Of a stretch of DNA of 64,000 bases, positions 22,901 through 36,523 are shown in pieces. How positions within the stretch are numbered: position 1 is the stretch's first letter; each line of letters starts with the position of its first letter. This DNA comes from Utricularia gibba (Eukaryota > Plantae > Magnoliophyta), in NCBI GenBank assembly GCA_002189035.1, contig NEEC01000009.1, forward strand, positions 2,852,001 to 2,916,000. Direction: 5' to 3'. A program made the translations under genes and the position numbers. Below the pieces are notes generated by a model. The model made no database searches. It saw only the letters and a list, made by a program, of their open reading frames with translations, and was not told where the DNA came from.

Positions 22901-25900
22901 TTACTCATTTTTTTTATAATTCCTAATTGGCTTTTACGAGGCATAAATATCACCCATTGTCTTTTGAAGGTATCACCTAAGGAAATTATTTATGAAAACC
23001 AAGGTAAAAATGATGCCTTGCAATACATGGAATGATGTCACTGGATTTTACCATGCATCGCGAAACTGAAGGTCTTTTTTTGGGCTGCTGCTTCATTTTC
23101 TTTCAGGGTTGTCCAATGCTACTAAGAGGTTTCTGAAGAAGTATACCTTGACTGGTTAGCTTTCTTATGATACAATCTTTCATAATTCAATTTAATATCA
23201 TACAAATCTATTGCATCATTCCTTCAAAATGCAGTTTGTATTTTTTCATCTTCTTCTTTGGGATGTACTTTTAACTGTCACATGTCTCCTCAGAAAATTT
23301 TAAATCTTAATGCATATGTAGGATTTATTTTGCTACCGTTCTATCACAGGATCAACAATGCTCCATATAAACCCTAGTGATACTTTTGGAGAAGCCTCAG
23401 AAGTTGAAGCTATGCTTCAGTCAAAAAATTACTTTAATGGATCTTGGTCTCATGCATTTGATGGAATTGAGCTCCATGATCTTGCACTGTGTGCTGTCGG
23501 GGGACTTATTAATCATCTATCCCGACTGATGGTAAGATATTTACTTAAAAAACCCAGAGTTCTTAAATTGAAATTCCTGTATTTTTCTTGATATTTATAA
23601 TTGCCTATGATCTTCTCAGTTAGATGATCTCCTTCGAAATGGTGATATTTTTTCCTATGAAGTCTTCGGAGGATTCCTTAGATTAGATGGTCAAACTCTG
23701 GAAAATTTGGAGATCTTCAATAATAATTCTGATGGTGGTCTATCAGGTCATCGACTTTTCTAACACAATGTCGCATTTCCTAGTTTTTCTGTTTTTTCCT
23801 TCATTTAAATAGTTGATAGATGCAGGTACTCTGTACAAATATCTTGATAACTGTGTCACTTCGTTCGGTAAGCGGCTGCTAAGAAATTGGATTAGCCATC
23901 CACTTCAAGACGCTGGAAAGATAAATAACAGGCTTGCTGTGGTAGAGGACTTCATGGCAAGCCCTGAAATCATGGCAAACCTTTCTCAATTACTTCGAAA
24001 GCTTCCAGATATGGAAAGGTTGTTGGGACGTGTGAAGTCTAGCTTGATGTCTTCTAAAGTGCTGTTGCTGCCTTTCATTGGAAAAAGGATACTGAAACAG
24101 CGTGTAAGTTTCACTTTTTAAAATGTTTTTTTTTTCCTGCACCCGTTGACTTGACATGATTTAATGATACTTGCTCCATGCGTTGGTGCAATAACTGTTT
24201 CTATGTTTAGACACATTCTCATGGAACTCGGACTTAGCTTGGCCATATTTACCAAGTCGGTATAGTGAATCTTTATGTACGGTTTTAGATTAAAAAAAAC
24301 CATTTCTACAGGTAAGAGCGTTTGGGTCACTCATAAAGGGGCTTCGAACTGGAGTTCAAACGTTACTGGTCCTGCAAGATAATGAAATGATGCCAAATTT
24401 CTCCAAAATTGTAGATCTTCCTGCAATTACTGGACCCGATCTTGACGACTCACTTGCTCAGTTTGAAGCTGCAATAGATAGTGACTTTGCAAATTATCAG
24501 GTTGGATTGGGGTCGTGATTGAAGCTATTCTACTCTAGAAGTACAGTTTATCATTGTGATAATTTCTTGACCAATGTCTCCTTAAATGAATCCATAGGAA
24601 AAAAATAAAAAGGCACTTCAGCTGATATTCCATTTCATTTGCATGATTCCATCCTACGAACATGCAAATCTTTTGCTGTTTTTCTTGTTCTCAATTTTGC
24701 ATCCTTGCTTCTTGTGTAGTAGCTCCTTTTTAAGGTCGTTAGGAACTTTCTCTTTTTCCATGTCAGGATCATACTGTTATAGAAGGAGATGCAGAAACAC
24801 TTTCAGTTCTGATAGAGCTTTTCCTTGATAAGGCAGCTCAGTGGTCTCAGGTCATATATGCAATAAGCTGCATTGATGTGCTGAGGTCATTTGCAAGTTC
24901 AGCAGTGTCTTCGTGTGGGGTGATGTGTAGACCAACAGTGCTGCCTTGTTCGAAAGTTGGTAATTCATCAATAGAGGCAACCTGTCCGCTTCTTGTGATG
25001 AAAGGTCTATGGCATCCCTATGCCCTTTGTGATGATGGAGCAGTGCCTGTACCAAATGATGTTCATCTGGGAGACGATAAAAGCAGCTATACTCCTGGTA
25101 CACTTCTGTTGACTGGGCCAAATATGGGTGGCAAATCAACTCTTTTACGTGCTACCTGCTTGAGTGTCATATTGGCCCAGGTTTGTTATTGTTTATCGAT
25201 GCTGTGTTGAACTTGCAGATTTTATCTTGTTAACATATAATGTATTTGCACAGCTGGGCAGTTATGTACCATGTGAAGAATGCACTCTGTCAATTGTAGA
25301 CACCATATTTACTCGACTTGGTGCAACAGATCGAATCATGACAGGAGAGAGTAAGTTGATCAATAAATTCTTTTCTGCACTGTTAAGAATCCATATCCAT
25401 GAAATTTGGAAACTTAAAGATTTGGATATTTAAATGATTTTCTTTCGTGAATGCGACTAGTTCTTGAATAGGGTTAGCTGAAAACTATTAAAATTTTGAC
25501 GTTTGGGCAGGATGATTAATTTTTCCTTTGGCAGGTACATTTCTTGTTGAGTGCTCAGAGACAGCATCAATTTTGCAACATGCTACACAGAACTCACTCG
25601 TGCTTCTTGATGAGTTGGGTCGAGGAACAAGCACTTTTGACGGATACGCAATTGCATATGCTGTGAGATACCCCTTCCATCTTTATAATATGTTTATCCC
25701 TTCATATGCAAGTCACACTTTCCTGGTTGTTTATTGACTGGAAATGTCTAACCTAAATGGTTATTCCTGAAAACGTGTACTTTCTGAGGAGACAAAACGT
25801 CTTGTATACTGTATGTAGCATATACTGCTACTATTTGGTCCCTGGACAGTGGAGTTATTTTTGAAAACCTGAGAATGTCGCCTTCACTGCGCTGACTTTT

Positions 25901-26395
25901 TCCTTATTCGTTGGTAATGTACAGGTCCTGCGTCATCTCATCGAGTCCGTCAACTGCAGGTTGCTGTTTGCTACGCATTATCATTCTCTGACCAAGGAGT
26001 TCGCTTCCCATCCTCGTGTAAAATTACAGCATATGGCTTACTCTTTCGAGAGCACTCCCGGTTCATCCTCCGATGCAGAGCGCAAGCTAGTTTTCCTCTA
26101 TCGCCTAGCATCCGGCGCATGCCCAGAGAGCTATGGAATGCAAATAGCCCTCATGGCTGGAATCCCAAAATCAGTAATTGAAGCAGCATCAAAAGCAGGA
26201 TTGGCATTGAAAGGAACCGTCGGACAATGTTTCAAGTCTAGCGAGCAGAGGGAGAACTTCTCCAGTTACCATGAAGAATGCCTGAAACTTCTTATATCGA
26301 TGTCATCCAAACCGGAGTCAGATTTCAACGACGGCATGTGGGATTCCCTCTGTTGCCTGTGGCACGAGATAAGATCTTTGCCTCTGGTTGGCTGA
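19999..26395 (+). CDS. MSH7: Plant-specific MutS homologue MSH7, multi-exon, apparently intact
   Basis: N-terminus [11 protein letters not shown], mismatch-binding [12 protein letters not shown], Walker [29 protein letters not shown] and GACPESYG. Exons were traced in frame through GT-AG junctions. The short central region is typical of MSH7 rather than MSH6. Confidence 0.93.
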
Positions 26396-26662: not shown

Positions 26663-28305
26663 TTAGGAACGCAGTAGACGTGACCGAGCAGCAGCTCTCT
26701 CTAACGCTTTCTGCTTGTTGGCCTCCATGCGAGCTTTCTGTTCATCTGAAATCAGATTTTGATTGGCAACTTCTTTGACAGCACGGGTCTCAGGAAAGCT
26801 CAGGGAACAGGAGCTCCTCTCTTCTGCACCTCCACCAGCGCCATCCTGAAAACATGCAGGAATCAGCAACATAACTTGGTTGCATGGATTTCCCTTCACT
26901 GGTTTCTAAGCATTCTTTTGGAAGAAAACACAGTGGGGGGTTGGATGCACGAGAATATAGAAAAAGAAACTGGACCGAAAATGTAGGCATGAAGATGATG
27001 GACATCGAGATCACATGTGGGATAGAGCCTGGAATTTCAAATCAGAGCAAATGAACTCACTTTAATGGAGTCTTCACCAACATCCCCAGGTGACAAATTA
27101 CTAGAGCCTTCATTCTGCTCATTTTGAAACGGTAAGGCACTTCTTTTGGAAGAAAACACAGTGGGGGGTTGGATGCACGAGAATATAGAAAAAGAAACTG
27201 GACCGAAAATGTAGGCATGAAGATGATGGACATCGAGATCACATGTGGGATAGAGCCTGGAATTTCAAATCAGAGCAAATGAACTCACTTTAATGGAGTC
27301 TTCACCAACATCCCCAGGTGACAAATTACTAGAGCCTTCATTCTGCTCATTTTGAAACGGTAAGGCACTTGGCATGTCCATGTTCCCAGAGTCATCTGCA
27401 TTGCCACAAATCAGCATCAAAACAGAGAAACTCAAATAGAAAAACAAGCCTCATGTGCAGGAGGTGAAGGTCATGAAGCAACCAATAGCTCTACTGCAGC
27501 CCAAACATCCCTTCAGTTTCCAGCACAGATTTATACTTGGCGTACCTTTTGTAACAACATGGTTTTGCTTAGGTTGAAGCTCTGTTGGCTCTATTCCATG
27601 AGAAACTTTATCTCGAAGGTCTCCAAGACATACCTACAGGATGAACAGCAGTAATATTAGAATACTGAAAACGCACCAAGGTGTCAGGAGGAAGATCAAA
27701 CGCTTGCCTTGACGCGCCTTGTTGCACCGACTTCTTCAACCTTGTGTATGAATTGATCGAAGTTGTAATAGGGGAGCAGGCGTGAGTGCCATTCAGCATA
27801 CAAGGAAAGCAGGTGCCCTAGATCATCCACCTGCATTATCATGAAACAATGAATTGAAGAAAACTGAATTCGCTATTCCCATTTTCTAGGGCTCCGATTC
27901 AAAAATTGATGGAACGAGAAAGGCGCATCTCAGTAAAAGGCTTCATACAGAGAACTAGAGAAGACGATTGATTGAATATGAGGAAAGAAAAATTGTCACC
28001 TCGTGACCGCGTCCGTGATACTTGAAGGCCTTTGGGAAGTAGCGGAGAACACTGCCGATGCCTGCATCGGAAAGGAGGAGTTCTGGCGTAAGCTTCGGTC
28101 GAGTTTTTTTCTGCCTCGGCTTCTGGATCACCGGAGGAGGTCGCGATCTAGAATTCGCGTTCGACGAGGAAGATTTTAGCGGCGGGTGAGTATCAGAAGC
28201 AGAGGAGCCCAAAACATCGGGCTTCGAAGGGCAGTCCCTCGACCAGTGACCGGGACGGCCGCACTTATAACATCCAGTAGGGGCGGCGCCGCCGGCAGCG
28301 CTCAT
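26663..28305 (-). CDS. Zinc-knuckle Swi3/Csm3/TIPIN replication fork protection protein, multi-exon
   Basis: CCHC knuckle CYKCGRPGHWSRDC, Swi3 domain RPKLTPELLLS...KYHGRGHE/VDDLGHLLSLYAEWHSRLLPYYNFDQFIHKVEEVG, and the C-terminal ISDEQKARMEANKQKALERAAAR motif. Confidence 0.88.
26913..27368. repeat. Perfect 228-bp tandem duplication (26913-27140 and 27141-27368) within the TIPIN gene
   Basis: Direct comparison shows both copies running ttcttttggaagaaaacacagtgggggg...ttttgaaacggtaaggcac with no differences seen. Confidence 0.95.
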
Positions 28306-28717: not shown

Positions 28718-31185
28718 TCACATGTAAGGACTGCTCTCGACGTAATGAAACAGTTCCGAAGCAGCATTTACAGTGGTACCAACGAACACTTCCCAGAACC
28801 AGAGATCCAAAGCAAGGACTGAAGAGAAAATCAGCAGTGCAAGAGTTTGGTACCTGTTCAAGGGCCACCCACTGACCTCGGCTAACTTCTTCAGCAACGG
28901 CAAAGACTCGCTACTCAGGTTCTTCTTCCTGATGGCCCATGCTGTTATCCACTGCACATCGGAAGGGACGAGGTCAAATTCTGCCTGCAGGCGGCGCCCC
29001 AGGTCCGGCATATGCCCACCTCCGTATAGGATGGCAATCTTATTGCTTCCTCTGCTTACTGCTTGATGTAAAGCTTTGGTTGCAGCTTTGTTTCTCTCGC
29101 CAATGATAACAGACTTCTCTTCTATATCAGCTGTCACCTGAGTGAACCTGAACATGGCATCCACCAAGTTTTTTTTGGCATCATTCAGTAGAGGGACACG
29201 AGCATATATAGTAGAGACTCAGATCATTAATGAAATAAACAGTTTTCCACATGAACGAAGAGAAGAGCATTCGATTACTTACTCGGACGTCAGCCTCTTT
29301 GCGAGAAAAACTTTCATTGCAGCACCAAAATCAAGTCGTGACAGTGCTTCTAATTCGGGATACTCTACTTGGTTTCCTAGGTCAGTGCAAACACTGCTGA
29401 TTAGGAAAAGGCCGAGGAGAGGCATTGGAATGATACGGGAAGCCCACAAGAGTTTAGATCTCAAAGGGTCGAGATCTTCTGGGATAGGGACAGCCTGCAC
29501 TACAGCCTTTGTGGATCTAATTGTCATATCCTTTGCAAATGTGAAGAGGTCCTCTCCTTTTTCAAGCTGAAAAGAGATAAAGTACCAAGAAACAAACAAG
29601 GGAATGATGAAAGATAACATCTTAGCAATAACAGCTTTTACCTTCTTAATTCAATATAGAAAAGGAAAAATTAAACCAACAACTACAAAACAACGCATCA
29701 GCCCCGGACAATATGCATGATCCAAGAAAAGATGAGAGATTTTTAAGAAAGCAAATGAGAAAATACGCAAATATTGTTCTTTTCCTTGGATGCAAATTCT
29801 GGATAAAGTGCATGCAGAATCTTTTAGCATGCCATTCTTTTTTTACGAAGAGCAAGTAAAAGGGTCACAGAATTCAATAAAAATCTGATTTTTCCAATTG
29901 CTGAAAAGAGCTAGATAATTGTCAAAATCACATTTAAAACTGACGCATGCATACATCTATATCAGGTGTTGGATAGATATCTAAGCCCCAACCCCAAGGA
30001 GGTTTTAAAAGAAGACCACTATCAATCACTTTCATTTCTGATGCCATTAGTTTCTCTGATCATCTTTGTTGTCCATTATCTACATTAGAAAGAGTACGTA
30101 GGAATATAAACTAATGCTATGCAGCAGTACCTGAAGCATTTTGAATGTTTCAAAGTCAAGATCTGCATGATACCAATTTTCAGCATCATAGTCAAGGCAA
30201 TCTAACTGAAAGTCAAGCACTAGCAACTTTGCCATCTGCCTCTGAATGCATCCAAGAATATTAAATCCACGAGACTGTTGACGCACAATTTTTTTCCCAG
30301 CAGCTGGATTTCGTCTACTTTCTAAACTTTCTCTGCTAGTCACCATTTCATAAAGAACGCAATCATATTGCTCAAGTACACTTTGCAGGGTGGAGAAATA
30401 CCTGCAAAAACACGTTGCTTAATAGATCTATAAGATGAGAAGTTGCAGGCAAATGATAAGGATCCGTCCATTACTAATACAAAGTTGCGTTTCTCGACAT
30501 TCTATTATCAATGAATGATAACTTCAGAGAGGTTGGCCATGTCATGAAAATGAGAAGAGAAAGGAGACATAGGATGCGAAAATATCTTGCATATTTCACG
30601 GAGAAGACAGATCAAAAAATGTCAAAAGCTATGACTATTATGAATACCACCAAAAAAACGTAGACATAAAAATCACGCAGCATGAAAATCAACAATAAAG
30701 AAAACTTGACCTTAATAGATTTTATCAATTATAAATAAACGAACGGATGATAAAGGCTTACTCTTTGTCAGCAATGTGGATAGTTGACACCAAGTCCACC
30801 TACACAAGCAGGAAAACGTATTGGTAAACCAACGCAACGACGCTACCAAGAGACCCAAAAAAATCAGTATATTTATACGACGGAAATTGAAAAATGACAA
30901 GGTTACCTGAAGGAAGGGTTGGAAAAGGGACCACGGGAACTTCTTGCGGTAACTAACAACAGCAGTCTGCAACTGAGCATGCGAATCCTTCTTATACCTC
31001 ATGAAATCAGCTATGGAATTGTTCTTTGAGAATTCCTCCACCGAGCCATCGCCAATTTTGCAGAAGATCTTGTATCTAGGAAGCCCACATCTCGCTGTTC
31101 TGGAGGAACGACACGATTGGGATGTGGCAACGGAAAATGAGAAGGCTAATCTTGGGTCTGTTATCGGCAGGCAACTATGAACCAT
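28718..31185 (-). CDS. Conserved uncharacterised plastid protein (resembles Arabidopsis At5g19540 from recollection), 5 coding exons
   Basis: Spliced frame MVHSCLP...ELQTAVV-like LQTAVVSYRKKFPW/VDLVSTIHIADKE/YFSTLQ...VLYEMV...HADLDFETF/...LSRLDFGAAMKVFLAKRLTSE/...IAILYGGGHMPDLGRRL...WPLNRYQTLALLIFSSVLALDLWFWE. All junctions are GT-AG and in frame. Confidence 0.85.
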
Positions 31186-31290
31186 TCCTCCGACTCTAAG
31201 ATTGACAGGCAAGTCTCCGGCGGAGGAAACGGCTCAGAGAAACCGAATTACGTCTCCGGTTGCGTACGAAGGTACGAAAGAAGAAGACAC
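31088..31290 (-). repeat. Copy A of a ~200-bp dispersed direct repeat (5' leader, ATG and first ~32 codons of the plastid protein gene)
   Basis: Aligns by eye with 32988-33190, e.g. aaggctaatcttgggtctgttatcggcaggcaactatgaaccat versus aaggataatcttgcgtcggttaccggcaaacaaccatgagccat. Confidence 0.85.
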
Positions 31291-32220
31291 CGACACCGGT
31301 GGTCGATAAGTTCCCAAAAATCAAGGATTTCTGCACCTTTATATCGTCCTGTCGGAAAACCCGACGGGTGAACCACACGAGTTGAACCGTTTCCGGTTCG
31401 AGCCGACTCGGACCTGTATATTACGTAATCAAACCCGCCACCAAATCCATGTATTATGACATTCAAACACATTATCAGATTTCAAGTTTGAAATTACGAG
31501 AGCATTTGGTTCACGGTTTCAGATCACCCAACTCTAAGAACAAGGAAGGTCTCAGCTTTTTGCATGGAGAAGTATCCTGGGGAGCTTTTGAACCCGGGGC
31601 TTCAGAGCAACCTACAAAATGTAACTGGAATTCAGCTGATGGGAGACAAACTTAACGCATATATGCCACAACTCTTCGGAACCAAGACAATGTCAAGCAT
31701 GGAAGCCAGGCATTGAAAAAAGACCAAAACAGATTTTGGATGATAAGGGGATGATGAACTGATGAAAAACCCTGATATAGACTCTCTCTGTAACGAGCCC
31801 GCTCTGCGTGCATTACATAGAGCAGTTTTATAGGATTTTGGGGGGGGGGGGTGAAGTTGTACGAGAACATCTCTTGAAGGTGGTAAAAAGAATAATTTGT
31901 TGCGTGCAGTCAATTGTCATCCGAAGAGACAGAATTCATTGTTCACCGGAAAAGGGCATTAGACATCATTTTCGCTCAAGACAATATGTATTCCCATGTA
32001 AAACCGTGAGCAAGGATTTGAACTTCAGCTCATACGCAGAATTACATTCAAACAAAGCAAATGATGGCAAAAGGAACATGAACTATGCATGTCAGAGAAA
32101 TCACATCCAGCAGACACAAAGTTGTAACTTTCCAAGCATTCAGTAAGATTCATCAACAAAATAAAACAGTGCACAACCGTGGATTTTGGAACCAAGGAGA
32201 AGCTTGTTTGCTTACCTTGT

Positions 32221-33087
32221 CTACACATCCCGGGATGGGATCATCCCTGTTTTTCTTGCATAGGCGAAAATTCCACCAGCCTCAATGACTGGCCCAGCAT
32301 CACCAATTGGCTTCAAGTTGTACTCTTTTCCAGAAGTATGGTTTATCAGCTTACTGTGATCTCCAGTTAGCTCAATAGTAACGACATCCCCAGTCTTACA
32401 TTCCTCGCATAACCTGCCTTCAGACTCCAATGGATAAATCTCTCCCGTCGCCACCGAATTCCTGAAGAAAATTCTTGCGTATGACTCCGCCACCACTGCT
32501 GTCACTCCGGCGGCACCCAATGCCACCGGAGCATGCTCGCGAGATGAGCCACAGCCGAAGTTATCGCCTGCGATCACAATTTTATATCTCGTTTTCATGG
32601 CCCCCGGTTCTATGAACCGTGTTTCATATGAAGAGGGCAATCCGATTAGGGCATAAGACCCGAGCTTTTCGTACTCATCGGGCTTCGAAGGGACGAGCGT
32701 AAGGTACTCGGCAGGGATAATTTGATCCGTGTCGATGTTATCACCAACAATGTAGCATTCGCCGTGGAATGTAGTGGAGACATCAGCAGCAGCACCAGCG
32801 GCGGCGCGGGGAATGGATGCTGGGGAATGACTGTCATACGTGAGAGGCCTTGAGGAATGAAACGAAAAGATGGAAGGTGTGCTGGAAAACTTGAAGCCGG
32901 AGCAAACAGCTGAGAGAGACGGAAAATTAGGTCTCTCAGCGGAATAATATCCGCCGAAACCAGCAATGTAGCTGCATCCTGAGATCGCATAGCTCGATGT
33001 TTTGGAGCATCGATACGATTGACATGAGGCCGCGGGAAAAGAGAAGGATAATCTTGCGTCGGTTACCGGCAAACAACCATGAGCCAT
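32221..33087 (-). CDS. leuD: 3-isopropylmalate dehydratase small subunit (LeuD/IPMI SSU), intronless CDS, 288 aa with an unusually long N-terminal extension
   Basis: TFHGECYIVGDNIDTDQIIPAEYL, NFGCGSSREHAP, SYARIFFRN and IEAGGIFAYARK motifs; first plausible ATG at 33087. Confidence 0.95.
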   Translation of the reverse strand: MAHGCLPVTDARLSFSFPAASCQSYRCSKTSSYAISGCSYIAGFGGYYSAERPNFPSLSAVCSGFKFSSTPSIFSFHSSRPLTYDSHSPASIPRAAAGAAADVSTTFHGECYIVGDNIDTDQIIPAEYLTLVPSKPDEYEKLGSYALIGLPSSYETRFIEPGAMKTRYKIVIAGDNFGCGSSREHAPVALGAAGVTAVVAESYARIFFRNSVATGEIYPLESEGRLCEECKTGDVVTIELTGDHSKLINHTSGKEYNLKPIGDAGPVIEAGGIFAYARKTGMIPSRDV

Positions 33088-33190
33088 TGCTCCCACTCCG
33101 CTTTCGACAAGAAGTCTCCGGCGAATGAACGCGGCCGAGACCGAGAGAAGGGGGGAATTAGGTTTCCCAGTAGCGTACGAATAGAAGACA
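32988..33190 (-). repeat. Copy B of the ~200-bp dispersed direct repeat (5' leader, ATG and first ~32 codons of LeuD)
   Basis: Homologous to 31088-31290; 18 of the first 30 encoded residues are identical. Confidence 0.85.
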
Positions 33191-34324
33191 GAAGTCCGGA
33201 CGGCCGCATCAGCGGTGGTGCTGTAACAAAGGGCCAAGGATGTCGGCCCGTGAATGGCCCAGCCCGACTCGGGCCGCCATATGTAACACTGCCATTTTTT
33301 TATTGGACACTGCAATTTATTTTTTTTATTCGTTTATAAAAATTTCTAAATTAGTAAATCAACCAATAATTAAAAAATCATAATTGAATTGGTTAGAAAT
33401 GAATTCTAAATAATAGAGTGTCTAAGAAAAAAAGAATATAAAATCATAAATCTTATAATGATATTTCACATTGATTAGAAACGTGATAAGTAATATACTT
33501 AAATAGAATGAGTTCTATTAATCTTATATAAGGTTTTTTTAAAAAAAAAGATAACATAAAAATGTGACAATTGAATGTTTAAAGTGGACAATATGTTATA
33601 AGTAGAGAATAAGTCGTTACATATTGTTTCAAAATGATGATACAATTGATAAATTTTGGGGATTTTTTTATGAAATTTCTCATAAAAAAATATATTAAAT
33701 TTAAATAATAGTGATTAAATGATTCTAAATCCTAAATGATTCATGAGAACTATTTTATGAAAAAAAAATGAAATTGTTTCCGAGTTTCAAGCCTGGTGCA
33801 TGTGAAGACGATAAAGAGGGAGCATGGAGATTCAGATACGGTGTTCTTTCGCAATTTTTTTTTTTTTTTTTTGAATGGTACGGGCGCAAGTGGTGATAAA
33901 TAAATATGACGAGGAGGAAGCTGGATACCCGGCATGATTCATCGAACGGTGAACGCATTCAAAGTACTAGTGTTTTAGGCCATAATGAACGTGTATCAGA
34001 ATCTGCGACACCTCAACAAATGGGTGTGCAACTGGTTGCCTGCCTTATGATTTCCATTTAATACATCCAAGTTGGATTCCTGACTAGTTTATATAAGCGA
34101 CTAGTGTGCAAAACCAGGTCTGAAGCACCCGGATTTGTTATTCCTCCTGCTTCTTTTCCTTGCCTTTTCCCTTTTCGTAGATCGGGGTTTTGATGGTTAG
34201 GAGAATTTTGGAGGTGTTTTTGGTGTTTGTTCTTGTTCCAGAATGAAATCTTGATCTGGGTTTTGTTGATATCTTCGAAAGTTTTGTCTTTGTGGCTTTA
34301 CCTCCGAGGTTCTCGTAACCAGTC

Positions 34325-36523
34325 ATGCCCGGCCTGGTGAACAACGGTGAGTTATTTTTTTCATTATTTCTCCTTGGGGGGTTGTTTTATGGCATCTCAG
34401 AATACCGTCGGTGAAGTCGAGTAATTTGTGTTGTGATGCTTTATCATGATGTTGATATCTTGTTTTGGGGAGTAGATGCGGGAGGTAAGTCGTAATAACC
34501 TTAGCTGATACTTTTCGTTGAGAACTGGGAATTGATTCTTGTGTTTGAGTGTTTGATCAGTGAAAGGTTTATCATGAAGTTCCTGGACTCATATTTTGCT
34601 GCCTTAGCTGTTGAAAGTAATTTATATCATGGATATTGTTTGCATTCTATAGGTTCTGGGATTGTGTTCGCCATTGGCTCCCACATTGAGGTCTTCAGTC
34701 CATCAAGAAAGTACTCCCGCATCAGCGGTCCTTTGACCTTCAGTAGAGAAGCTGCCAATACAAGGCCTTCAATTGATCTGCTCCCTGATGAGTGCATATT
34801 CGAGATCTTGAGACGATTGCCTAGTGGCCACGAAAGAAGCATATCTGCTTGTGTTTCGAAGCGTTGGCTGACAATCTTGAGCAGCATTCGTATTTCAGAG
34901 TATAGCTGGAGCAAGAATTCTGAGGGACACATGATCAACTTCGATGAAATTGTAAGTAATGAAGAAGTTGATGCTGAATGTGATGAGTGGCTTTCTAGGA
35001 GTGTGGAAAGTAGAAAAGCAGCAGATTTGCGGCTTGCTGCCATTGCGATTGGCACTTCAGCTCGTGGAGGTCTTGGAAAGCTCTCAATTCAAGGCAGTAA
35101 CTCGTTTATCGGTGTTTCAGACAGCGGTTTGGCAGCCATTGCTCGAGGCTGCCCATCTCTCAAAGATTTATCCTTATGGTGTCTACCCTCCATCAGTGAT
35201 GAAGGTCTCCTTGAAATAGCTCGAGAGTGCCATTCATTGGAAAAGCTCGACCTTTGCCTACTGCGTTCCATTTCAGACAGGAGTTTAGCAGTAATAGCCA
35301 AGAACTGTCAAAGCTTGAATGCATTGAGCATAGATTCATGCCCCAGAATTGGTGACAACACTCTACGTGCAGTTGCAAAGTTCTGCTCCAATCTGAAGTC
35401 CATTACTATCTTAGACTGTCCTCTTATTGGGGATTGTGGGATTTCAAATCTCCTGTCTTCACCTACTTGTGCCTTGACTCATGTGAAATTCCAAGCTCTA
35501 AATTTCTCCGATTACTCAGTTGCTGTGATAGGTTGCTACGGGAAGGCAATCACTAACCTCGTTTTATCCCATCTTCCCAATGTGAGGCAGAGAAGCTTGT
35601 GGGCTATGGCGAAAGCTAAAGGTCTGCAGTCCCTCACTTCCTTGACAGTGGCAGCATGCGGCGGCATGGGTGATTTGAGCCTTGAAGCTGTAGGAAGGGA
35701 CATTCCAAACCTGAAACACTTGACTATCCGCATGAACTGCTTCGTATCAGACAAGGGGCTTGTCTGCTTTCTGAAAGATGCTAATTCTCTTGAGTCGTTG
35801 CACCTGGAGGAATGTGATATGATCACTGAAACAGGCGTTTTTATGGTGCTTTCCGGCGCACTTTCAAAACTGAAGTCCTTAACACTGATCAAATGCATGG
35901 GGATTAAGGATGGAACATCCACAGAGCTCTCCTTTGTTTCTCCATCCAGATCTCTTCGACATCTTTCCATCCGAAACTGCCCTGGGATCGGAAACAGAAC
36001 CATGAGCATCATTGGGAAGCTGTGCCCGAAGCTCCACCATTTAGTTCTCAATGGACTTTGCAGGATCACAGATGATGGCCTGTTTCCACTACTGCAGAAA
36101 TGTGAAGATGGGCTTTCCAAGGTTTCTCTCAGCAACTGCTCCAGCTTGAGCGATGAAGTGGTGTTGTTCTTGTCAAGGCATCACAGCAAAACACTCAAGC
36201 AGCTAAACCTCTACGGTTGTTGCAAGATCACAGATACAAGTTTGTCTGCAGTTGCTGAGAAATGTCCCTCCCTGAACGACCTCGACCTGTCCAAATGCTC
36301 CATCACAGATACCGGCCTGGCCGCCTTGTCCAATGGGGTGCAGCTCAACTTGCAGGTTCTTTCCCTGTCTGGGTGCGCAATGATCTCCAGTAAGAGCCTG
36401 GCAGCTCTAGAGAAGCTTGGGAAGACTCTGGTAGCCTTGAATCTCCAGAAGTGCAGTTCCATGAGCACAGCCTCGATAGAACTTCTCTCTGAGAGATTAT
36501 GGATGTGTGATCTGCTGTACTAA
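34325..36523 (+). CDS. EBF1: EIN3-binding F-box/LRR protein (EBF1/2-like), 2 exons
   Basis: Micro-exon MPGLVNN(G) at 34325-34346, intron to 34607, then F-box LLPDECIFEILRRLP, LAAIAIGTSARGGLGKLSI, cysteine-containing LRRs and terminal LWMCDLLY*. The EBF1 versus EBF2 assignment is uncertain. Confidence 0.9.

Follow-up and report, generated by a model that had tools for sequence, protein, structure and literature searches.

A probable DY1-derived 5′ end and composite transit peptide in the LeuD gene of Utricularia gibba

The window analysed here, a 64-kb stretch of Utricularia gibba DNA, holds two neighbouring genes on the minus strand, LeuD and an orthologue of DY1, whose ATGs at 33087 and 31185 lie 1902 bp apart. 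The genes and associated features are as follows.

32221..33087, minus strand: LeuD (3-isopropylmalate dehydratase small subunit), intronless; assigned from the ORF, Pfam, orthologue identity and dN/dS
32773..32992, minus strand: retained, putatively ancestral LeuD transit peptide, residues 33–105, without a start codon of its own; from alignment with Lamiales LeuD N-termini
28718..31185, minus strand: DY1 (At5g19540) orthologue, intact; from tblastn with Rehmannia DY1 and family assignment
31185-30907, ~30799-30761, ~30400-30128, ~29581-29282 and ~29150-28718, minus strand: approximate exons of DY1
31338..31343, minus strand: TATA-like box TATAAA of DY1, read from the sequence and of putative function

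The LeuD reading frame runs from the ATG at 33087 to a stop at 32221 and comprises 288 codons plus stop (288 aa). Its top protein matches are IPMI small subunits of Lamiales (E ~1e-111; Genlisea 89% identical), and the protein search identifies it as the orthologue of annotated plant IPMI SSU proteins. A Pfam match to Aconitase_C (PF00694; E = 4e-18) covers the aconitase C-terminal (swivel) domain, which has the conserved core GDNFGCGSSREHA and whose invariant columns are all common to 18 orthologues. The mature domain, which begins at approximately residue 106 with TFHG, shares 88–92% identity with Lamiales LeuD, and a dN/dS of 0.05 between U. gibba and Genlisea places the enzyme under strong purifying selection. 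This implies that the gene is functional and requires an upstream start, and the next in-frame Met after the ATG at 33087 is residue 164, within the mature domain. Neither the 288-aa protein nor the longer ORF product had an exact match in public collections.

The DY1 locus covers residues 1–438 of the Rehmannia protein in tblastn, in five exons with an unbroken frame, the small exon encoding VDLVSTIHIADKE. Family placement rests on a search against representative sequences (E = 1e-63), the family list containing 'DWARF AND YELLOW 1'. Single U. gibba DY1 exons matched no Pfam family, and a full-length DY1 orthologue gave only a sub-threshold TraB match. Arabidopsis DY1 is a protein of the chloroplast stroma with an experimentally verified, cleaved N-terminal transit peptide (PMC5742152), and by orthology the U. 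gibba protein is probably stromal as well.

The 5′ ends of the two genes share a repeat of ~200 bp (LeuD 32993-33194 versus DY1 31091-31286, both on the minus strand; 77–83% identical), which spans in each case ~100 bp of 5′ leader and codons 1–32.

31091..31286, minus strand: donor segment A, DY1 5′ leader plus codons 1–32; aligns with the LeuD copy
32993..33087, minus strand: copy A′, coding part, LeuD codons 1–32 (MAHGCLPVTDARLSFSFPAASCQSYRCSKTSS); 79% identical to 31091-31185, gap-free
33088..33194, minus strand: copy A′, leader part, the 107 bp that precede the LeuD ATG; aligns with the DY1 leader at 31186-31286
33195..33260, minus strand: a weaker stretch of ~65 bp by which the copy may extend upstream; matches the DY1 TATA region, with the TATA not kept

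The similarity begins 101 and 107 bp upstream of the DY1 and LeuD ATGs, respectively, continues to codon 32 and ends abruptly downstream. In the leader part there are 78 matches and 16 mismatches (83% identity without gaps), both copies keep the context of the ATG (A at −3, G at +4), and 18 of the first 30 residues of the two proteins are identical. The local alignment score of 122 compares with 20.0 ± 2.4 for shuffled sequences (maximum 30, n = 300), and blastn returns a core of 138 bp with 76.8% identity (E = 4.2e-24). The 64-kb window holds no third copy of the segment. The initial annotation had pointed to the resemblance of the two 5′ ends, with its residue count, its upstream reach of ~100 bp and the distance and shared strand of the ATGs, and had set the alignment against shuffled controls as its test; all of this is borne out.

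Transit peptides have a biased composition, and two Ser-rich ones could come to resemble each other by chance or convergence; however, the DNA score lies ~40 SD above the shuffles, ~100 bp of the homologous sequence is non-coding leader, and the identity extends to synonymous positions. Chance similarity of the two starts is refuted by the shuffle test and blastn, and we give it a negligible probability.

Comparison with related species indicates the direction of copying. DY1 orthologues in Lamiales, Solanales and Gentianales all start with MV(H/Q)xSLxI...SF, and because this start is conserved across three asterid orders the MVHSxLxI...SF N-terminus is, as judged from these sequences, ancestral to DY1. 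The coding part of segment A aligns with the DY1 genes of Handroanthus and Rehmannia at both protein and DNA level. In LeuD, by contrast, 18 orthologous Lamiales-type sequences including Genlisea start ~32–35 residues later and are without the leader, and in-frame stops 16 codons (Genlisea) and 25 codons (Handroanthus) upstream of the LeuD ATG rule out hidden extensions there. When the 105 N-terminal residues of LeuD were searched by themselves, no relatives were found. Scored against other asterid DY1 sequences, the LeuD leader has the Utricularia-specific states of U. gibba DY1 (C5, P7, D10, R12, F15, Q23, S24, R26) and the same indels, and it retains the ancestral P18 and S21, both lost in U. 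gibba DY1. Shared derived states together with these two retained residues suggest that the leader was copied from a DY1 gene of the Utricularia lineage, and the sequence comparison thus identifies DY1 as donor and LeuD as recipient. Taken by themselves, the two copies show no direction, and that of LeuD is the upstream one, as would suit a segment that was originally the 5′ end of LeuD and was copied onto DY1, but the presence of the MVHS... start in DY1 orthologues of three orders and its absence from every LeuD orthologue examined, with upstream stops excluding hidden extensions, make this reversed polarity very improbable.

The copying of DY1 sequence onto LeuD is old and fixed, because the copies differ at ~17–21% of aligned sites (dS ~0.38 between the two copies versus ~1.17 for U. 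gibba and Genlisea LeuD), and the earlier description of a case caught in the act is not upheld. Nor does promoter capture, also proposed initially, find support: clear homology extends no further than ~100 bp ahead of the ATG and is 5′ UTR-like, and the DY1 TATA-like box, which sits 153–158 nt upstream of the DY1 ATG just beyond the strongly conserved repeat, is not retained in LeuD. For the possible extension at 33195-33260, a collinear global alignment scored 10 versus 2.6 ± 1.5 for shuffles (the score was reached by 1 of 1000), at only one of the four lengths tried, and unconstrained local alignment upstream of the strong repeat was not significant. Relics of a first tandem unit were sought upstream of 33260, where no resemblance to the LeuD–DY1 intergenic region or to LeuD was found. 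If transcription began far upstream, the out-of-frame ATGs at ~33296, 33281 and 33209 would open upstream ORFs, an observation that counts against the history proposed below.

An uninterrupted frame leads from the copied ATG at 33087 across the junction into LeuD, and 105 residues precede TFHG. Residues 33–105 align with Lamiales LeuD N-termini through the motifs NPNFPSL and FKLxS; the orthologues, 248–261 aa long, have ~70–75 residues ahead of TFHG. The initial annotation was accurate in counting ~105 residues before TFHG with no internal Met, and the length of roughly 60–75 residues that it gave for plant IPMI transit peptides agrees with the orthologues. Residues 1–105 contain 27% Ser+Thr and 4% acidic residues, a composition like that of transit peptides. 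Alignment with Lamiales proteins and Genlisea DNA places the old LeuD Met anywhere between residues ~32 and 40. The candidates for the old start, none decisive, are ATC (codon 35), ATT (codon 41) and, out of frame, the ATG at 32977-32975, which aligns within 1 nt of the Genlisea LeuD ATG, so that ATT GCT at codons 41–42 cannot be confirmed as the relic it was first taken for.

Non-AUG initiation as the only start of a housekeeping plastid enzyme would be unusual, and this bears on a reading in which the DNA copy is real and the extension untranslated: transcripts would start within or downstream of the copy, or translation at a near-cognate codon such as ATC (codon 35) or ATT (codon 41), and the DY1 piece would be an inert 5′ leader. 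The placement of the old start near codons 32–40, where ATC and ATT codons occur, would fit such a reading, and the 32 codons common to both genes have diverged in a nearly neutral manner, which would fit it too. The three codon positions carry 8, 6 and 7 differences between the copies, an even spread. The initial annotation had put forward dN/dS on the shared segment as a check; over these 32 codons alone it is ~0.6, and on this evidence selection on the copied peptide cannot be demonstrated. Besides the rarity of a sole non-AUG start, an untranslated extension is opposed by the open frame from the copied ATG into LeuD, by the favourable surroundings of that ATG, conserved in both copies (A at −3, G at +4), and by the lack of any further in-frame ATG before residue 164 despite strong purifying selection on the enzyme. 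We consider this reading quite improbable and regard the ATG at 33087 as the presumable start, transcribed and used.

Synteny was compared with 10 kb flanks, less at contig ends. DY1 and LeuD are not adjacent at the loci compared (DY1 in Handroanthus and Rehmannia, LeuD in Handroanthus and Genlisea). A convergent MutS-family gene lies downstream of LeuD in both U. gibba and Handroanthus, and apart from it no other gene of the window is shared at these loci. The history of U. gibba includes whole-genome duplications, and the neighbours on the upstream side of LeuD differ among U. gibba, Genlisea and Handroanthus; LeuD at this locus might be a redundant, relocated duplicate of a canonical LeuD elsewhere, with the chimeric leader tolerated and not required. 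Against this stand the dN/dS of 0.05 in the mature domain and the convergent LeuD/MutS-family arrangement common to Handroanthus, which suggests an ancestral locus, and we hold redundancy to be somewhat unlikely, although it deserves more weight than the other alternatives. It bears on the importance of the capture only and is compatible with the capture itself.

We consider it likely, from the sequence relationships described above, that LeuD carries a DY1-derived 5′ end captured in the Utricularia lineage and is translated from the copied ATG with a composite transit peptide. The capture would postdate the divergence of Utricularia and Genlisea. A stretch of ~200 bp from the DY1 5′ end (perhaps as much as ~265 bp), with the larger part of the leader, the start codon and transit-peptide codons 1–32, would have been placed 1.9 kb upstream, at the head of the intronless LeuD gene next door, and joined in frame at the original LeuD start codon or within a few codons of it. 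Translation of LeuD would now begin at the DY1-derived ATG at 33087 and yield a 105-residue composite transit peptide of 32 residues from DY1 and ~73 from LeuD, with the original Met lost and the mature enzyme unchanged. The homology, its direction, the continuity of the frame, the lack of another usable ATG and the purifying selection on the enzyme are established by the sequences; that the ATG is transcribed and used, that the hybrid leader directs plastid import and which kind of duplication took place are inferred. The proposal that LeuD obtained its present leader, start codon and N-terminal targeting segment through a partial duplication, joined in frame to its old transit peptide, is therefore supported, and is now polarised through related species. 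Copying would have occurred at the DNA level, either by tandem duplication followed by deletion or as a templated patch in break repair. With one LeuD body and no second intergenic copy, tandem duplication needs a later deletion, and a templated repair patch would account for the locus equally well in a single step; since no relics are seen beyond the marginal 65 bp, tandem duplication plus deletion is indistinguishable from templated insertion.

The LeuD locus would represent a well-polarised natural swap of the extreme N-terminus of a transit peptide, together with the start codon, for those of another stromal protein. The donor DY1 still adjoins and LeuD has kept its former transit peptide, which makes the locus a natural test of how modular transit peptides are and poses the question of whether a composite of 32 + 73 residues imports as well as either parent; no change is expected in enzyme function. 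A broader and rather doubtful proposal is that in the compact U. gibba genome nearby-templated break repair, or small tandem duplications with deletion, repeatedly overwrite the 5′ ends of genes with those of their neighbours, LeuD being one instance whose start codon would have been rescued or neutrally replaced by the graft of another stromal protein's import signal. If this were true, compaction itself would drive the shuffling of leaders and transit peptides at an unusual rate.

The presequences of rice mitochondrial rps11 were reportedly copied from atp2 and coxVb, in work by Kadowaki et al. from 1996. Nuclear RPL32 of Populus and Malpighiales has a transit peptide derived from SODcp, as related in PMC8429499 (citing Cusack & Wolfe 2007; Ueda et al. 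2007). To the extent that these accounts describe the two cases, LeuD resembles them in that it appears to reuse, in frame, the targeting segment of an unrelated organelle protein through duplication or fusion at the DNA level; unlike LeuD, the recipients RPL32 and rps11 are genes newly moved from the organelle and without a leader. LeuD, in contrast, is long established in the nucleus; it was already equipped with a functional transit peptide, nearly all of which it keeps, only the start codon and the extreme N-terminus being replaced, and its capture, unlike those of RPL32 and rps11, involves no intron or splicing. Chimeric genes whose 5′ end was taken from a different gene, through partial tandem duplication or exon shuffling, have been described in Drosophila yakuba (PMC5460883) and rice (PMC3673630), and as in these chimeras a local duplication would have set a 5′ UTR and first codons before a same-strand neighbour. 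The LeuD and DY1 copies are 1902 bp apart, which is the size expected of the duplication unit, as in partial tandem duplication, whereas the single LeuD body and the lack of a second intergenic copy in U. gibba differ from it. The capture by LeuD involves no new mechanism and is an old, clean example of an already known route to targeting leaders.

LeuD, the gene for the 3-isopropylmalate dehydratase small subunit, and the U. gibba orthologue of Arabidopsis DWARF AND YELLOW 1 (DY1) are both on the minus strand in head-to-tail order, the DY1 ATG following that of LeuD by 1902 bp. The best protein matches come from Lamiales and Genlisea, as expected for U. gibba; the U. gibba LeuD protein itself was not found in public collections.

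33087 to 32221, minus strand: LeuD, intronless, 288 amino acids, ATG to stop (open reading frame with a Pfam Aconitase_C match)
31185 to 28718, minus strand: DY1 orthologue, multi-exon, from the ATG at 31185 to the end of the last exon; exon 1 is 31185-30907
31338-31343, minus strand: TATA-like box of DY1, just beyond the well-conserved repeat

The last DY1 exon, used as search query, retrieves full-length plant proteins of ~430–470 residues, from a family that contains proteins named DWARF AND YELLOW 1. DY1 (At5g19540) resides in the chloroplast stroma and loses its N-terminal transit peptide once imported (PMC5742152). Five U. gibba exons cover residues 1–438 of the Rehmannia orthologue without frame breaks (tblastn), the small exon, VDLVSTIHIADKE, having been located by a separate search, so the gene is intact.

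The 5′ ends of the two genes are homologous. LeuD positions 32993–33194 pair with 31091–31286 at DY1 with a local alignment score of 122, and the shuffled controls called for in the initial annotation score 20.0 ± 2.4 (n = 300, maximum 30); the blastn core spans 138 bp at 76.8% identity (E = 4e-24), and blastn found no third copy within the window. Identity is 83%, with a few indels, over the 101 and 107 bp upstream of the ATGs and 79%, ungapped, over codons 1–32, past which the homology ends sharply. A further ~65 bp upstream is collinear, marginally so, its score being reached by 1 in 1000 shuffles and at only one of four lengths tried. The initial annotation was right in every detail of its description, i.e., 18 of the first 30 residues identical, the spacing of the ATGs, ~100 bp of upstream similarity, and 105 LeuD residues ahead of TFHG, where the mature domain starts.

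Orthologue comparison assigns a direction to the copying. All DY1 orthologues compared, from Lamiales (Handroanthus, Rehmannia, Salvia, Forsythia), Solanales and Gentianales, start with MV(H/Q)xSLxI...SF, to which U. gibba DY1 conforms, and within the shared segment the coding DNA can be aligned to the DY1 start of Handroanthus and Rehmannia. In 18 LeuD orthologues, including that of Genlisea, the closest genus to Utricularia among those compared, a MAAAA... start falls opposite U. gibba residues ~32–40; in-frame stops 16 (Genlisea) and 25 codons (Handroanthus) upstream of the LeuD ATG exclude a hidden extension in these two. The comparison of N-termini in relatives that the initial annotation proposed thus places the leader as ancestral to DY1 and missing from the LeuD orthologues compared. 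Moreover, the LeuD leader and U. gibba DY1 have in common, against all other DY1 sequences, the derived residues C5, P7, D10, R12, F15, Q23, S24 and R26 as well as identical indels, while ancestral P18 and S21 are kept in the LeuD leader and have since changed in U. gibba DY1. From the conserved DY1 start, the leaderless LeuD orthologues and the Utricularia-type states in the LeuD leader, we infer that the segment is derived from DY1 of the Utricularia lineage and was copied onto LeuD, both copies diverging afterwards. This bears out the main claim of the initial annotation, that partial duplication of the neighbour supplied the LeuD 5′ end.

Strong purifying selection acts on the mature domain of LeuD (dN/dS 0.05), and the gene is therefore functional. 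A plastid enzyme requires a translated N-terminal leader, and ahead of the mature domain LeuD has no ATG in frame other than the DY1-derived one at 33087, the next in-frame Met being no earlier than residue 164. Both copies have A at −3 and G at +4, and translation of LeuD most likely starts at 33087. Downstream of the junction after codon 32 the old transit peptide is still recognizable by its NPNFPSL and FKxS motifs, without a Met. Since the only ATG is DY1-derived and the old transit peptide is retained, the predicted precursor would carry a composite leader of 105 residues, which is Ser/Thr-rich with few acidic residues. Substitutions in the copied codons are spread evenly over codon positions (8/6/7; dN/dS ~0.6), a transit-peptide stretch too short to be informative. 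A 48-codon out-of-frame ORF (33063–33209, minus strand, ATG at 33209) overlaps the LeuD start and, should LeuD transcription begin upstream of the copied segment, would function as an upstream ORF.

LeuD and DY1 are not adjacent in Handroanthus or Genlisea, and lie on separate contigs in Rehmannia and Salvia splendens. A MutS-family (MSH-like) gene is convergent to LeuD on its downstream side in both U. gibba (24878–26395, plus strand) and Handroanthus (L004:20710-20780, in the sequence that carries LeuD), which suggests that U. gibba LeuD is at its ancestral locus. DY1 and TIPIN-like genes stand between the two in U. gibba; no DY1 or TIPIN homology was detected in the intervening 10 kb of Handroanthus. 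The upstream neighbour of LeuD differs, being a same-strand heme oxygenase gene ending 135 bp before the LeuD ATG in Genlisea aurea (L001:1980-3090, in the sequence that carries LeuD), DWNN/zf-CCHC in Handroanthus, and in U. gibba a divergent F-box/leucine-rich-repeat ORF of 663 residues (34532–36523, plus strand; EBF-like by eye) across an AT-rich spacer of ~1 kb. In or beside the TIPIN-like gene (minus strand) lies a perfect two-copy tandem repeat (26913–27370, 228-bp period, 100% identity), which may reflect either tandem duplication in the very recent past or an artefact of assembly; since the ORF fragment '...ALPFQNEQNEGSSNLSPGDVGEDSIKVSSFALI' is present in two copies, a small exon may be duplicated. 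A search with the 105-residue N-terminal region of LeuD found no relatives, and no sequence from another Utricularia.

Two routes could have produced the copy. A patch of 200–265 bp may have been templated by DNA 1.9 kb distant while repair took place at the start of LeuD, or a unit of LeuD body, intergenic region and DY1 5′ end may have been duplicated in tandem, with later deletion of the upstream LeuD copy. The copy spacing equals the 1902-bp period of the unit in the tandem route; no relic of a first unit was detected in window self-comparison or upstream alignments, so either route would fit. A homopolymer of 12 G lies in the intergenic region (~31841–31852).

The observation of the initial annotation is confirmed and its main inference supported. 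Its claims of promoter capture and recency are not supported. The DY1 TATA-like box falls outside the conserved repeat and, in the alignment upstream of it, is not kept in the LeuD copy. Nor was the event 'caught in the act': the copies differ at 17–21% of aligned sites, with dS ~0.38 over the 32 shared codons, against ~1.17 when the mature domain of LeuD is compared between U. gibba and Genlisea. From these rough figures the capture would be about one-fifth to one-third as old as the Utricularia/Genlisea split, and the divergence indicates an old, fixed event.

Reuse of targeting leaders through duplication or fusion is already established. Rice rps11 presequences are one example; the SODcp-derived leader of nuclear RPL32 is another (PMC8429499). 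Partial tandem duplication also commonly recruits the 5′ end of a neighbouring gene (PMC5460883). Unlike RPL32 and rps11, U. gibba LeuD already had a transit peptide, which it keeps, and the replacement is limited to the start and extreme N-terminus of the recipient.
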